Made by a program: the position numbers and the translations under genes
Origin: Oculina patagonica
Lineage: Eukaryota
DNA length: 64,000 nucleotides
NCBI RefSeq assembly: GCF_052425735.1
Contig: NC_135765.1
Location: 7,254,001 to 7,318,000 of the forward strand
Direction: 5' to 3'
In this document: in pieces, positions 2 to 43,814 of the stretch
Numbering within the stretch: the first letter of the stretch is position 1
Layout of the letters: each line of letters opens with the position of its first letter
The notes under the pieces: generated by a model
What the model saw: the letters and a program-made list of their open reading frames with translations, nothing else
Told to the model about the DNA's origin: nothing
Database searches by the model: none

Positions 2-1165
2 GCCATTATTGTGACTGGTGATACAACAGAAGCATATGTGGTCCAAATGTGGTCATTTCTTCTCATTATCACAATGTTTGGCTGGCGTTTAGTGAAGAAA
101 CTTAATCTGCTGATTCTCAATCTACTGGCTGCCTTTTTGGACACTTGTTACAGACTTTATCTTCAGGTTTACGGAATATACGATAAGTCCTGGAGGTCGT
201 TTCCTTTAAATGCTCTATTTCTGATCATAGTTCTAATGAATTCTATTCTCGTCGGGAGAGAAGTTGCTAAAAACAGTGAAACTGAAAGATCTAGAAGATT
301 CAAGAAAGCTATCAAGGTTTCTGCTATTCTTGCAGCCCAATTAGCCTTTGGGATTCCAATCGCTTTTGGTCTCGTTTATGGCCTCATTCCATTTTATGGT
401 CGTCAGAGCGAGATAAACAGGGCAGTAATAGCTGGCGCACTGCCTCTAGTAACAGCTATTCCAAAGGTCATCGTGCGTTTGGCAGCGCAAAGAATTGATT
501 TCATTCACCCGGGCGACGCGCACGTGCTGTTAATCGTTCTGTACACCGCATCTGCTATCGTTTTCCGTGTCATGCAAGCAGAGCTCACAAGTCTTGGACT
601 GTTCATTTTGCTGAGCTTCGCACACGGCGCCGTAGACTTGATAGAAAGGTTAACCATTGTTGTGCGAGATTATCTGTGGTACTTTATTTACAAGAAGATT
701 AAACGAGACACAGAAGCCCTGGCAATTTTGAGCGCTGATAAATTTCGTACCCCAAGAAGCATGCGCTTTATTGCTGACATGAGCATTCAGATGATTCTCG
801 GAGAATCGACTGCGTTGATAGCAGCGGTCGGCTTCATCCAGCTGTACAGTTTCATGTACAACAACAACAGTTTGTCCTTCGCTGACATGCATTTGATTTC
901 AGATTTCTTTATTCGCGTTTCCATTGCTCTTAGCATCGATTTCGTTTTCAATTCATTCTCGTTTTGGCTGCAGATGTCATATTTAAACATCGCTGTGGTG
1001 CGCGTTTGGAAGAAAAAATGGCGGAAGCACATGGTTGTTGGTCTTATTTTGACCTCCGTTACAATGTGTTATTTCACCCCTTATCTGTTTGCTGTTGTAA
1101 GAGACAAACATTCCGGAGAGAAAGTGCGTCATTTTAATTGCACAGGACCATTTTCTAGGTTCTAG
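2..1165 (+). CDS. Uncharacterised multi-pass membrane protein, copy 1 (subfamily A); 5' end lies outside the window
   Basis: Frame is open from base 2 (AIIVTGD...) to TAG at 1165. Intronless. Aligns by eye to the other five copies and is closest to the 9929 copy (SFADMHLISDFF, RHFNCTGPFSRF). Confidence 0.85.
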   Translation, partial: AIIVTGDTTEAYVVQMWSFLLIITMFGWRLVKKLNLLILNLLAAFLDTCYRLYLQVYGIYDKSWRSFPLNALFLIIVLMNSILVGREVAKNSETERSRRFKKAIKVSAILAAQLAFGIPIAFGLVYGLIPFYGRQSEINRAVIAGALPLVTAIPKVIVRLAAQRIDFIHPGDAHVLLIVLYTASAIVFRVMQAELTSLGLFILLSFAHGAVDLIERLTIVVRDYLWYFIYKKIKRDTEALAILSADKFRTPRSMRFIADMSIQMILGESTALIAAVGFIQLYSFMYNNNSLSFADMHLISDFFIRVSIALSIDFVFNSFSFWLQMSYLNIAVVRVWKKKWRKHMVVGLILTSVTMCYFTPYLFAVVRDKHSGEKVRHFNCTGPFSRF

Positions 1166-2084
1166 CTAGGTTTTAGCGGAGCTCCACAGCGGCCCAAAGG
1201 GCCGTCAGAGCGTAGCCCCATACCCATATAAAATCGACAGAAATAGGAAAACAATGAACACGAGTTTACATGGTCATCATGTAAAATGTTTTTCTATTGG
1301 ATCGCGGGCTCAAGACCTATTTTTTATGTCCATGGTTAGTAAATTCAGCCGGAATTTAAATAAAGGGCAAAGTAAATTATCGGGGAGGTGCGCTTTTAGG
1401 CTTGGCTAAATCTATTTAATTGCCAACGAGACAGCCGAGCCAAGAGGCGAGGCTGTCGAGGCGGCAGAATCATAGAGCCGTGTGCGTATGAGTGTATAGG
1501 CAGAGAAAATCTTAAGTTCTGCGTAAGGGACTTTTTTTTTACCATATTTGGGTGTAAGTAAACCCCATATTTGGGTTGTATTGTTCTTCCCAACTGGTTC
1601 CCAGTCTCTCACTCCTTGCTAGAGAGCAAATGTCCAAAATGGCGTCCACGCGGCTCGCTGTTAAAATTTTCAATGTGGTCTTTCATCCCTTTACCGATCA
1701 ATACACCTTTAGGGAATTATAAATCGAAAGAGAATACCCTACAGAATATTCGACCGCCGAAAAAATGAACATCAAGGTCTTCAAAGCGATGAAATAATGT
1801 TTCGACTTTGGGAGTCCTTTGATTTACGATCGAAGAGAGACATGAAAATCAAAAGCGGACTGTTGACTTCAAATAGAGTTTTCTTGACTTATGAGAATGC
1901 TGAAGTCGGGTAAATGCTACCTTTTAGTGTTGATTGTGTTTATAGTAATTGTTTGACCGATGATTTATTCCAAATCAAATACCGTTTATATATTATTTGG
2001 CACGCATTTTCGCTCCGCGTAGGAATAACATCAATACAAAGCGACGCTCACTAAAGCATAACAGCTCTTATTAAAACGGCATCG

Positions 2085-40832: not shown

Positions 40833-42229
40833 CACACCCACCGGGCTATAACGCACAATGTCGGCATGTTATTTCTCACTGTAATGTCAGCTTGTGATGC
40901 TCTATAGAAGCTGAACAAGGACACAGTTCCGATGCAACACTCTCCACTGTCTGACACTAAGTTACCCGGTGAAAAATTCCGTAAATAACGCAGCCCTCGT
41001 GAGAAATCAACACCCCAGAGTTGGGCCGGAAATTATGATCCTCCCATCCCCTACCCCGCTGCCCCCTTCCCCGCTTCCCCACCCACTCCCCAGAAAAAAA
41101 CTTCCTCTGAAAGCGACGTTCCATTTTGCATTTTTGGGCGTTGAACACGGTACTATAATGAACATGTGGACCGTGGACGTTTCGGTAAATGGCTTCACTT
41201 AACCAAAAACAATGTTTATTTTAATAAATTCGTCGAGACGTTTATATCAGTTCAAGACAGAATTTACATTACGCTAACGTTAAGTTTTATACATGGAAAC
41301 TAAGTGCTAATTACATTAACTAGAAAGAAATTTAACTGGAAGACTAAGTCTGACCGTGCTACTTTTTAAATCATTAAAAAACATTGGCATTACCAAGAAG
41401 CAAGCTCCCTCGTGCAAATCACTTGGTGTAGTAGAGTTTGTTGGGGTTTTTTTTTTTTAAAGAGGGTGACTTGGCAAGTACATGAATCCAATCAAGTTAT
41501 AAGCTAGGAATTATTTTTTAAATAAAAACTTCACTTAACCAAAACAAAAACGTGAGGCTACTGAAATGATCTGTTGGTCAGAAGCGCCTATTTATCATCC
41601 GTACATAACACAAAACCTGCGAAATACGTAGATTGACAAAATTATAAATTCGCCCGACTTTTCACAAATTGCTGCACAGCCACAGGTTTTCAAGCTATGA
41701 AATAAGTTTTGTTGCGAATTTTTTGAATAATAATAAAAAATATCCTGCTCAATACCTTGCTGACTGCTGAATATATTGTCGGAATTTAGCCAACTCGCGT
41801 CGGCCTCAGCAAGTATCAGGCGAAATTCCGCGCTTTTTTGCAGGATAATAAACCCATAGATAATTTGACGCAAAAATGCCAGGAGAAATTTGTCTCGTGA
41901 ATTTCTCTTGCCTATACATCTATTGTATTGTTGATAAAAGTTAACTTCGGCCATTTGCGCTACAAATTACTCGATTTAAAATCAACGATATGAAGTGCCA
42001 CCCAGATATCGCCTTTCACACGCAAAAAGGATCTGGGAACAAATAGCTTGCACATTGGTCGTGTTCGGTGCGCGTGGAGTTGTGGGACTCCTAACCATCA
42101 ACCCCCGCGCTCCCTGTTTCCCGTTTACCGACGAAATGTCACGGCTCCTGGGGCAAGGCAGACACAGCGACTTGCCTGAGCCTTTGTCTTTTCAAGAAAA
42201 AATCTAGGTAGCCTTGAAGCGTGAATGAG

Positions 42230-43814
42230 CTAGAACTTTGCAAATGGACCTGTGCAATTAAAATCAAATCTTTTGACACCTGAAGTGTTTTTGTCTTTCA
42301 CGACAGCGAACAAATGAGTTGTGTAATAACACAATGTCACAGTGGTCACGATAAAAGCAACAACCATGTGCTTCCGCCATTTTTTCGTCCAAACACGCGC
42401 CACAGCGATGTTTAAATATGACATTTGGAGCCAAAAAGAGAATGAATTAAAAACGAAATCGATGCTAAGAGCGATGGAAACGCGAATAAAGAACTGAGTT
42501 ATGAAATACATGTTGCTAGAAGACAGATTATCGGCAGGGTACATGAAGTTGTACAGCTGGATGAAGCCGACCGCTGCTATCAACGCAGTCGATTCTCCGA
42601 GAATCATCTGAATGCTCATGTCGGCGATAAAGCGCATGCTTCTTGGCGTGCGAAATTTATCAGCGCCCATGATCGTCTCTACTCCGTCTCGTTTAAGCTT
42701 CTTGTAAATAAAGTACCACAGATAATCCCGTACAACAATGGTCAACCTTTCCAGCAAGTCCACGGCGCCATGTGCGAAGCTCAGCAAAATGTACAGTCGA
42801 AGGCTTGTGAGCTCTGCTTGCATGACGCGGAAAACGATAGCAGATGCGCTATATAGAACGCTTGACAGCACGTGCGCGTCGCCAGGGTGAATGAAATCGA
42901 TTCTTTGCGCTGCCAAACGCACGATGACCTTTGGAATAGCCGTTACTAGAGGCAGTGCGCCAGCTATTACTGCTCTGTATGTTTCGTTTGCTTCTCCATA
43001 CAAAGGGATCAATTTATACACGAGATAAAATGTGATAGGAATCCCAAAAGCAAATTGAGCTATCAGCAACGCAAAAACCCTTATTGTTTTCTTGATTTTT
43101 CTAGATCTCTCGGTTTCGCTGTTCTTCGCTATTTCTCTACCGATAAGTAAACTATTCATGACCAGAATCGACACAAACAAGCCGTTCAATGGAAACGACA
43201 TCCAGGGCTTCTTGTAAATGCCATAAATTTGTAGATAAAGTCTGTAGCAAGTGTCAATGAACGCTCCAAGCAGATTAAGAATCAGAAGATTGAGCTTCTT
43301 GATCATAGGCCAGCCAAACATCACCAGCGCAAGAAGAAATGTCCACAGTTGAACCAAGTAGGCTTCAGTAGTCGCTGCGGTGACCATAATGGCCTGGGTT
43401 CTCTTGGGAAGTGCTGTCCAGTTTGTAGACTGCATATCAAAGCAAAGATCAACGGAATTGAAATCTAAAATCAGTATTAAAATAGCGACTGAACCGAGTG
43501 GCACGCCACCAACAATCTGAATGTAAAATGCATTCTTCACGGCCTTCCAAAGCGACATCCACCATTTTGCCGGTCGAGATCAAGAAGATTTTCCAGCCCA
43601 TTTTGCTGTCGTCTCCCAGGGGTGGATCGTACTCCTGAAAGATCGCATCATTGTTGTTGAACTTCTTAAAGTCCTCCAAGGGATCCTGGCGTTGTATCAA
43701 CGGAGCATCTTCAAGGAATCCCTGTCCCTGATAAGACTGAATCACTTGGCCAGCGGTGAAGGTTTCTGCCAGATATGCAAGCACGCCTTCAAGCGAGAAT
43801 GGAGTCGACGCCAT
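42230..43814 (-). pseudogene. Membrane protein copy 6 (subfamily B) frameshifted by a 7-bp insertion
   Basis: ATG at 43814 (MASTPF...). Insertion at 43582-43588 after MGWK shifts the frame; the downstream 442 codons are intact (43558-42230). Confidence 0.85.

Follow-up and report, generated by a model that had tools for sequence, protein, structure and literature searches.

A tandem cluster of intronless eleven-helix membrane proteins in the coral Oculina patagonica: putative SPCC553.12c-like proteins with a possible TMEM16/OSCA/TMC-like fold and signs of region-specific gene conversion

The TMEM16, OSCA/TMEM63 and TMC proteins constitute three branches of one superfamily, and the TMEM16 branch has a Ca2+ site built of five to six acidic residues on transmembrane (TM) helices TM6-8. 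The subject of this work is a tandem cluster of intronless genes in a 64-kb stretch of the genome of the coral Oculina patagonica (C8:7254001-7318000, called the window below), encoding membrane proteins of ~520 amino acids (aa) with eleven TM helices. The TMEM16 proteins (TMEM16A, F and K, nhTMEM16 and afTMEM16) differ from the coral family in their length of 700-1000 aa, their cytosolic N-terminal domain and their ten TM helices. The acids of the TMEM16 Ca2+ site have no evident family-wide counterpart in the coral proteins, in which the only conserved acids are D395 and E404 (TM9) and D449 (TM10). OSCA/TMEM63 proteins have an outside N-terminus, an inside C-terminus and an extra N-terminal helix, TM0, and their TM2 and TM3 are separated by a large cytosolic domain. 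The coral family lacks this domain, its N-terminus is inside and any extra helix would be C-terminal. The TMC proteins (TMC-1 and TMC-2 of C. elegans) are larger, have ten TM helices and contain the Pfam TMC domain, absent from the coral family; they work with partner subunits and, unlike the coral proteins, are not encoded in large intronless arrays. The published anoctamin superfamily comprises seven families, averaging 703-994 aa and recognised by domain matches to Pfam Anoctamin, TMC or RSN1; some of its uncharacterised eukaryotic families occur in oomycetes, ciliates and algae (PMC5868767). The size of ~520 aa and the absence of Anoctamin, TMC and RSN1 matches exclude the coral family from these seven.

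The second described protein that has to be considered is SPCC553.12c of the fission yeast Schizosaccharomyces pombe, which resembles the coral proteins in length (521 aa), in its all-helical multipass build and in its equally uncharacterised function, but is encoded by a single gene, compared with at least 83 copies in the coral. In a genome-wide screen the SPCC553.12c deletion was relatively Torin1-resistant and the protein was listed as a "transmembrane transporter (predicted)" (PMC5990653).

The reading favoured here, with moderate confidence when taken as a whole, is that the window contains a tandem cluster of anthozoan-expanded SPCC553.12c-like membrane proteins with a TMEM16/OSCA/TMC-like fold, subject to region-specific gene conversion. 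The seven-copy cluster would be part of a very large intronless family, expanded in anthozoans, of compact ~520-aa proteins that would be members of the uncharacterised eukaryotic SPCC553.12c-like family (PF28488). Each would begin with a cytosolic N-terminal stretch of ~80 aa, followed by eleven TM helices and a glycosylated C-terminal tail on the extracellular side; a disulfide between C121 and C517 would probably link this tail to loop 1. Among solved structures the predicted fold appears nearest to the TMEM16/OSCA-TMEM63/TMC channel-scramblase superfamily, and if the shared fold holds, the architecture would be a ten-helix core with one more helix added at the C-terminal end and the tail behind it fastened to loop 1. 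Such proteins may form a polar pathway across the membrane for ions, and possibly for lipid head groups, lined by R326/Q329 (TM7), R391/D395/E404 (TM9) and R441/D449 (TM10). Ectopic gene conversion would keep the N-terminus and the TM6-10 core near-identical, and TM1-5 together with TM11 and the tail would persist as two cassette types.

The topology was examined by hydropathy, by AlphaFold2 modelling of two proteins and in a family alignment of 48 members diverging to 20% identity (mean column identity 22%). Hydropathy and the two models agreed on eleven long helices preceded by a poorly ordered N-terminal stretch of ~80 residues. The modelled proteins were copy c4 of the cluster (predicted local distance difference test, pLDDT, 86.4; predicted TM-score, pTM, 0.87) and the divergent family member P0266 (~20% identical; pLDDT 84.2, pTM 0.84). 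Among the 48 members the nearly invariant positions are C121, F163, R326, Q329, R391, D395, W472 and C517, with C121 of loop 1 conserved in 98% and C517 of the C-terminal tail in 96%. The N-x-S/T sequons are commonest in the C-terminal tail (39 of 48 members) and basic clusters come after TM2, TM4, TM8 and TM10. Since the tail carries sequons and a conserved cysteine paired with that of loop 1, it is placed outside. The results support an eleven-TM, N-in/C-out topology with an external C121-C517 disulfide, as had been proposed from the letters of the window (the original prediction); the basic clusters, the sequons and the cysteines of the DLC and NCTGPF motifs on which that proposal was based are all present.

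The original prediction also drew attention to polar and charged residues within the helices. Those of TM7, TM9 and TM10 named above are conserved family-wide, but the E in TM2, the D in TM3 and the K in TM6 are not conserved at the depth of 48 members. Likewise, D348 and E352 of TM8 are found in the window copies and are not conserved across the family. Membrane proteins seldom keep buried polar residues that have no part in a polar pathway or in structural salt bridges, and the residues retained here may have one of these roles.

A tblastn search of the whole window with the 524-aa c4 open reading frame (ORF) as the query revealed exactly six homologous stretches and zero further fragments (Table 1). 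Together with the upstream copy c0, the cluster comprises seven copies over ~48 kb. Four of the six copies in the window are intact and two, c2 and c6, are damaged near the start. Taken as a whole gene, c1 is an intact 523-aa ORF starting 407 nucleotides (nt) before the window, with a stop-free match at C8:7253600-7255162. The premature stop of c2 arose at a codon that is CAG in the other copies (CAG>TAG, window 11426-11428). In c6 a 7-bp insertion, TCTTCTT, at ~43582-43588 shifts the frame near codon 75, as shown by DNA alignment with c3, c4 and c5; the residual ORF of 442 aa (42230-43558) starts from an internal ATG and retains all TM helices. Both lesions fall within the N-terminal segment on the cytosolic side, and in-frame Met codons (M71 and M83 in c4 numbering) are available between them and TM1. 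To judge from the sequence, c2 and c6 could possibly still give a protein with the complete set of TM helices from internal Met codons. Thus the six intronless paralogs of ~524 aa described initially do exist at the places given for them, but it had gone unnoticed that two of them are damaged, and the cluster extends further, to a seventh copy just upstream.

Table 1. Gene copies and other features of the window (window positions, unless a contig is named)
Feature	Position	Strand	State, evidence or remarks
c0, seventh copy (type B)	C8:7249936-7251489		518 aa, intact; 2.5 kb upstream of the window
c1 (type B)	2..1165	+	only aa 138 to C-terminal end within the window; tblastn, genome match, ORF
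c2 (type B)	11503..9929	-	full length, TAG at codon 26; translation, codon context
c3 (type A)	13936..15513	+	intact 525-aa ORF, transcribed; tblastn, RNA-run contigs
c4 (type A)	19168..20742	+	intact 524-aa ORF, transcribed, structure modelled
c5 (type A)	22682..24256	+	intact 524-aa ORF, RNA-contig coverage patchy
c6 (type A)	43814..42230	-	90% identical to c4, frameshifted; tblastn split between frames -3 and -1
Assembly gap (N run)	17804..17977	.	in c3-c4 spacer; no homologous fragments beside the gap
40-bp tandem repeat	7443-8156 and 8478-8610		17.9 and 3.3 copies, 97-98% matches
DAGAT (PF03982) exon	28724-29332	-	E ~1e-30; inside the cluster, between c5 and c6
Penelope-like ORF, 918 aa	31238-33994	+	RVT_1 (E 7.7e-7) then GIY-YIG (E 1.6e-4); between c5 and c6
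Short JAB/MPN fragment	37281-37754		
DAGAT (PF03982) exon	45210-45770	+	E ~1e-30; just past c6

The assembly gap, 2.3 kb past the c3 stop and 1.2 kb ahead of the c4 ATG, does not cross any coding sequence. Since its length is only an estimate, extra sequence or one more copy might hide there. Upstream of c3 and c4 ~490 nt (about -650 to -160 from the ATG) are 79% identical, which indicates that promoter-proximal DNA was duplicated together with the gene; the region upstream of c5 has nothing in common with that of c3 or c4. In the c3/c4 region neither a TATA box (up to 200 nt upstream) nor an AATAAA signal (up to 400 nt downstream) was seen.

Transcription was followed with contigs from RNA-labelled runs matching at no less than 97-98% identity. 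The c4 coding region was covered (19.2-20.9 kb), with zero coverage at 18.6-19.0 kb and, in run X2, also at 21.0-21.6 kb. Coverage of c2 extended over 9.9-11.49 kb and stopped at the ATG, that of c3 spanned 13.9-15.6 kb, and the contigs dropped to zero in the spacers at 11.49-11.89 and 13.08-13.48 kb. Since coverage is confined to the gene bodies (c2, c3, c4 and, patchily, c5) and the spacers are silent, the pattern is that of RNA and not of contaminating DNA; against this it must be set that the RNA label is the index's guess of the library type. Two polyA raw-read runs (X23 and X24) placed no reads at all on the window and do not count either way. The original prediction had named a lack of transcription of any copy as an outcome that would speak against it, and transcribed copies were found.

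The coding sequences consist of one frame each, and no splice joints were present in the RNA-run contigs over the copies. An apparent joint, 19356>23512 (with a twin at 14127>14769), was rejected as an intron on account of its non-canonical CC..AG ends, its five inserted letters and the fact that it joins paralogs; it was classified as an assembler chimera. The pairwise ratios of nonsynonymous to synonymous substitution rates (dN/dS, Nei-Gojobori) among eight copies were 0.17-0.38. The c2 gene, in spite of its TAG codon, gave 0.17-0.30 versus the other copies and was no more relaxed than the rest, so that its lesion is either recent or bypassed. The genes are a real, transcribed family of multipass membrane proteins under purifying selection.

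The copies belong to two cassette types, A (c3, c4, c5 and, by its 90% identity to c4, c6) and B (c0, c1, c2 and the copies on contigs C13 and C6). The divergence between the types changes along the gene. Over codons 1-80 the between-type dS is 0.15-0.58 (third-position differences of 0.09-0.27 over codons 1-90), over codons 81-271 it is saturated at 1.2-2.2 (0.43-0.70 over codons ~90-270), and over codons 272-506 it returns to 0.26-0.56 (0.16-0.29 over codons 281-480), followed by third-position differences between types of 0.42-0.43 in codons 481-524. In the N-terminus and TM6-10, where divergence is low, copies of different types differ as much as copies of the same type, and within the types dS is similar everywhere. 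The genes are therefore mosaics: the N-terminus and TM6-10 have been homogenised across the types, for which ectopic gene conversion is the simplest explanation. TM1-5, and likewise TM11 plus the tail, survive as two old cassettes, and these two parts are the ones joined by the conserved cysteine pair. The persistence of two cassette types despite conversion might, speculatively, reflect selection for distinct outer modules.

The mosaic also accounts for much of an earlier impression. The contrast between a nearly invariant TM6-10 and a variable TM1-5, first noticed in the window, is real at the protein level, but it is mainly a recombination mosaic, and in the whole family the mean pairwise identity is just a little higher for TM6-10 (26.6%) than for TM1-5 (22.0%). 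The idea of a conserved core is thus true in part, but substitution rates give no sign of the diversifying outer face that had been deduced from the contrast. Pooled dN is 0.216 in TM1-5 versus 0.087 in TM6-11, and dS shifts in the same way (0.81 versus 0.38), so that dN/dS is alike in both halves (0.27 and 0.23, respectively). Positive selection on the outer loops was rejected, with no 20-codon window above 0.6 and the highest regional dN/dS, 0.69, in a loop of 11 codons.

To estimate the size of the family, the 529-Mb assembly was searched in six frames (160 first-look candidates; as just 82 of them were scored, the count is a lower bound). The O. patagonica genome contains at least 83 family matches, ~62 of them uninterrupted single frames with nearly the whole protein covered. 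One ~2-Mb array at C12:17.1-19.05 Mb comprises ~39 members with 28-34% identity to c4, almost all of them uninterrupted frames of ~550 aa lying on both strands; one corresponds to NCBI LOC144633165. Paralogs in this genome are down to ~28% identical, i.e. they differ by up to ~70%. Two copies, at C13:20927538-20929112 and C15:41388-42962, have identical score, identity and frame length (910.7 bits, 77%, 559 aa) and probably represent a single locus that the assembly contains twice, as a haplotig or a recent duplication.

An exhaustive search of 1.84 billion representatives yielded 364 clusters (50% identity) at E<=1e-3 and 97 at E<=1e-30. The named members are all anthozoan and all "uncharacterized" or "hypothetical" (Oculina, Orbicella, Porites, Desmophyllum, Stylophora, Montipora and the sea anemone Actinia), which places the family in robust corals, complex corals and one sea anemone (Scleractinia and Actiniaria). 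No named non-cnidarian animal homolog turned up among the named cluster members. The genes are already present in the NCBI annotation as uncharacterized proteins, and nothing relevant was found in the literature on named homologs, on remote TMEM16/OSCA/TMC relatives or on coral intronless membrane families. The family already has catalogue entries, though no assigned function, and is far larger than the window shows.

Known relatives were sought at the level of both sequence and structure. With a local copy of Pfam, c3 and c4 at E<=1 and the 48 members at E<=0.1 gave only scattered single matches to unrelated families, read as noise, and no usable match was obtained among PDB sequences with either a single protein or the family profile as the query. 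Foldseek against the PDB gave no significant match for either model (E>0.02, TM-score <0.25), and an atlas shape search returned only the protein's own cluster. When Foldseek was run against the AlphaFold DB clusters, coral paralogs came first. The gene models of some of them are fused to G-protein-coupled receptor (GPCR)-like or other parts, hence their odd names; the GPCR label itself was rejected, as neither a seven-helix bundle nor a Pfam 7tm match was found. The coral paralogs were followed by uncharacterised proteins (Foldseek probability 1.00, E 2e-8 to 2e-2, 9-14% identity, best TM-score 0.64/0.68), which, to judge from their accessions and locus prefixes, probably belong to alveolates (chromerids, perkinsids and dinoflagellates), the oomycetes Phytophthora, Pythium and Aphanomyces, green algae, a foraminiferan and early-diverging fungi.

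The sole confident match among the models of reviewed proteins was S. pombe SPCC553.12c (UniProt O74949; Foldseek probability 1.00, E 5e-4), aligned over nearly its full length (1-502 vs 18-516). The identity is 12%, and the low TM-score of 0.46-0.47 and the root-mean-square deviation of 16.9 Å indicate that the helices of SPCC553.12c and the coral proteins are packed or placed differently. The atlas neighbours of c4 and P0266 are cnidarian clusters in which 13-14% of the members carry PF28488 "SPCC553_12c" (Pfam 38.1), the nearest having a TM-score of 0.82 and PF28488 in 14% of its members. Foldseek thus assigns the coral proteins the same fold as the founding protein O74949, albeit with this low TM-score. 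The simplest reading is that of an old eukaryotic family expanded in anthozoans.

These searches also bear on the description of the family as unrecognised. It holds as far as local Pfam and PDB sequence matches are concerned, but the nearest atlas clusters carry PF28488 and NCBI annotates the genes as uncharacterized. The likeness to hypothetical proteins of protists and oomycetes, put forward as an impression in the original prediction, holds at the fold level and extends to SPCC553.12c; AlphaFold combined with Foldseek, proposed there as a check, produced confident models and uncharacterised relatives with no solved structure.

The resemblance to the TMEM16/OSCA/TMC superfamily emerged from structural scoring with VIA-align. 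The only natural polytopic membrane proteins that aligned with nearly the whole c4 model (~60-524, 217-263 residues) were TMEM16A (9.1), TMEM63A (7.7), TMC-1 (7.6), TMEM16K (7.6) and afTMEM16 (6.3). Re-alignment of c4 with Foldseek's top 1000 chains, mostly transporters, channels and receptors, gave 10.4 for TMEM16F, 7.8-8.8 for nhTMEM16, 7.4 for OSCA3.1 and 6.4 for afTMEM16, whereas all other membrane proteins scored no more than 5.5 and over stretches of ~100 aa only. For the P0266 model nine TMEM16/OSCA/TMC chains appeared in the top 50, and 24 of 28 top entries came from the superfamily, with 230-283 residues aligned; the nearest outsiders were mycobacterial EccD (5.3-5.6) and SbmA (4.9). 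The specificity of the signal and its repeatability across two models argue for a shared fold.

Several results weigh against it. Foldseek listed no TMEM16/OSCA/TMC chain in the PDB top 50 for either model, and no anoctamin, OSCA or TMC entry occurred among the AlphaFold DB cluster, Swiss-Prot or atlas shape matches. None of the 48 members matched Pfam Anoctamin (PF04547), RSN1_7TM (PF02714) or TMC (PF07810) at E<=0.1. The coral proteins have eleven helices and the C-terminus outside, in contrast to ten helices and both ends inside in TMEM16 and TMC, and the c4 and P0266 models share one alignment and hence are not fully independent. In hhalign the family profile matched the coral's own OSCA exon with a probability of 0.3% and four large coral anoctamin exons with 0.5%; both are weak tests, the target profile being a single sequence in the first case and near-identical paralogs in the second, and these null outcomes were not counted as evidence against homology. 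On balance, a TMEM16/OSCA/TMC-type fold, which is read from predicted models, appears about as probable as its absence. The protein family is probably channel- or scramblase-like, a transport function being what we infer from the models, and within the initial proposal of a candidate channel, transporter or receptor it is the channel-like option that gains some support.

The coral genome also contains separate canonical multi-exon OSCA genes. At C12:30.84-30.93 Mb it carries seven or more canonical anoctamin genes (PF04547) in tandem, each with an unusually large exon covering positions 1-288 of the hidden Markov model (open frames of 516-557 aa).

The competitor that survives best, rather unlikely in our estimate, is that the family has its own, yet unsolved fold and acts as a carrier-type transporter, its TMEM16/OSCA/TMC likeness being a coincidence of large helical bundles. 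It is in line with the failure of Foldseek to find a solved relative, with the atlas shape search ending in the family's own cluster, with the absence of any anoctamin or OSCA signal in the Pfam and hhalign comparisons, and with a helix number and a C-terminus side unlike those of TMEM16 and TMC. The computed PomBase label of SPCC553.12c, "transmembrane transporter, predicted", points the same way, but it is an automatic prediction and not an assay. The S. pombe protein was placed among the transport genes in the fitness screen in which its deletion was relatively Torin1-resistant (PMC5990653). A coincidence would have to explain why, with each of two models of members ~20% identical, TMEM16, OSCA/TMEM63 and TMC came out ahead of almost all other natural membrane folds, in end-to-end alignments of 210-283 residues.

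A bolder version of the favoured reading would make the family a compact branch of the TMEM16/OSCA/TMC superfamily, whose roughly one hundred intronless anthozoan copies serve as a repertoire of chemo- or mechano-gated sensory channels. In such a repertoire the converted TM6-10 would be the conduction core and the outer cassettes would give stimulus specificity. This version is regarded as doubtful.

Horizontal acquisition from a protist, an oomycete or a dinoflagellate symbiont, raised in the original prediction, could explain the lack of introns and the patchy distribution, and the fold-level relatives are indeed mainly non-animal, as far as the accessions tell, with no named non-cnidarian animal homolog among the named members. 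However, the non-cnidarian relatives are just 9-14% identical, which leaves no close donor, and the family is old within Anthozoa, as its paralogs reach down to ~28% identity and it occurs in robust and complex corals and a sea anemone. The GC content of the genes, 0.38-0.44, is the same as that of the surrounding coral DNA, and the genes reside on 34-Mb coral chromosomal contigs amid ordinary animal genes, e.g. DGAT-like exons. Deep paralogy, the wide anthozoan range and the low identity to non-cnidarian relatives make the pattern that of an old eukaryotic family, and horizontal transfer finds no support and is very improbable. A decaying or selfish array, i.e. a dead retrogene family or mobile-element cargo without function for the organism, might be suspected from the two damaged copies out of six, the very high copy number and the Penelope-like retroelement ORF and other repeats inside the cluster, but is hardly credible given dN/dS of 0.17-0.38, open frames at ~62 of 83 loci, buried charged residues and a cysteine pair kept down to 20% identity, transcription, unrelated flanks of c4 and c5, and no transposase or reverse transcriptase linked to the copies.

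Besides the gene copies, the window contains several other features (Table 1). RVT_1 and GIY-YIG constitute the domain pair of Penelope-like retroelements, and both matches in the 918-aa ORF are slightly below the Pfam cut-offs. The two DAGAT exons, lying on opposite strands, point to two DGAT2/MOGAT-like genes. Two overlapping ORFs of 270-291 aa (7282-8157 and 7440-8252) were rejected as genes, being a read-through of the 40-bp tandem repeat. Between c2 and c3, at 12088-12883, each of the four RNA-labelled runs showed a very high contig depth (~200-1300), numerous loose ends at 12161 and 12690, and variable skips of ~470-480 nt inside the segment. It resembles an element that is either strongly expressed or present in many repeats, and a similar depth spike was observed at 18400-18599.

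To our knowledge, no large receptor or channel repertoire has been characterised in corals beyond GPCRs and classical channels. At least 80 transcribed, selectively maintained eleven-helix proteins encoded in tandem arrays make up one of this genome's larger membrane-protein families without an explanation. The homogenised core combined with two old outer cassettes makes a clear case of region-specific gene conversion in a membrane protein family. The most interesting reading, that of a compact TMEM16/OSCA/TMC relative, is unproven and based on predicted structures. If the link is true, the family would be a minimal version (~520 aa, no large soluble domains) of the superfamily on which hearing, touch, osmosensing and lipid scrambling depend, one that would be easy to express for its small size and intronless genes, and a function would be suggested for the orphan fission-yeast SPCC553.12c and its protist relatives.

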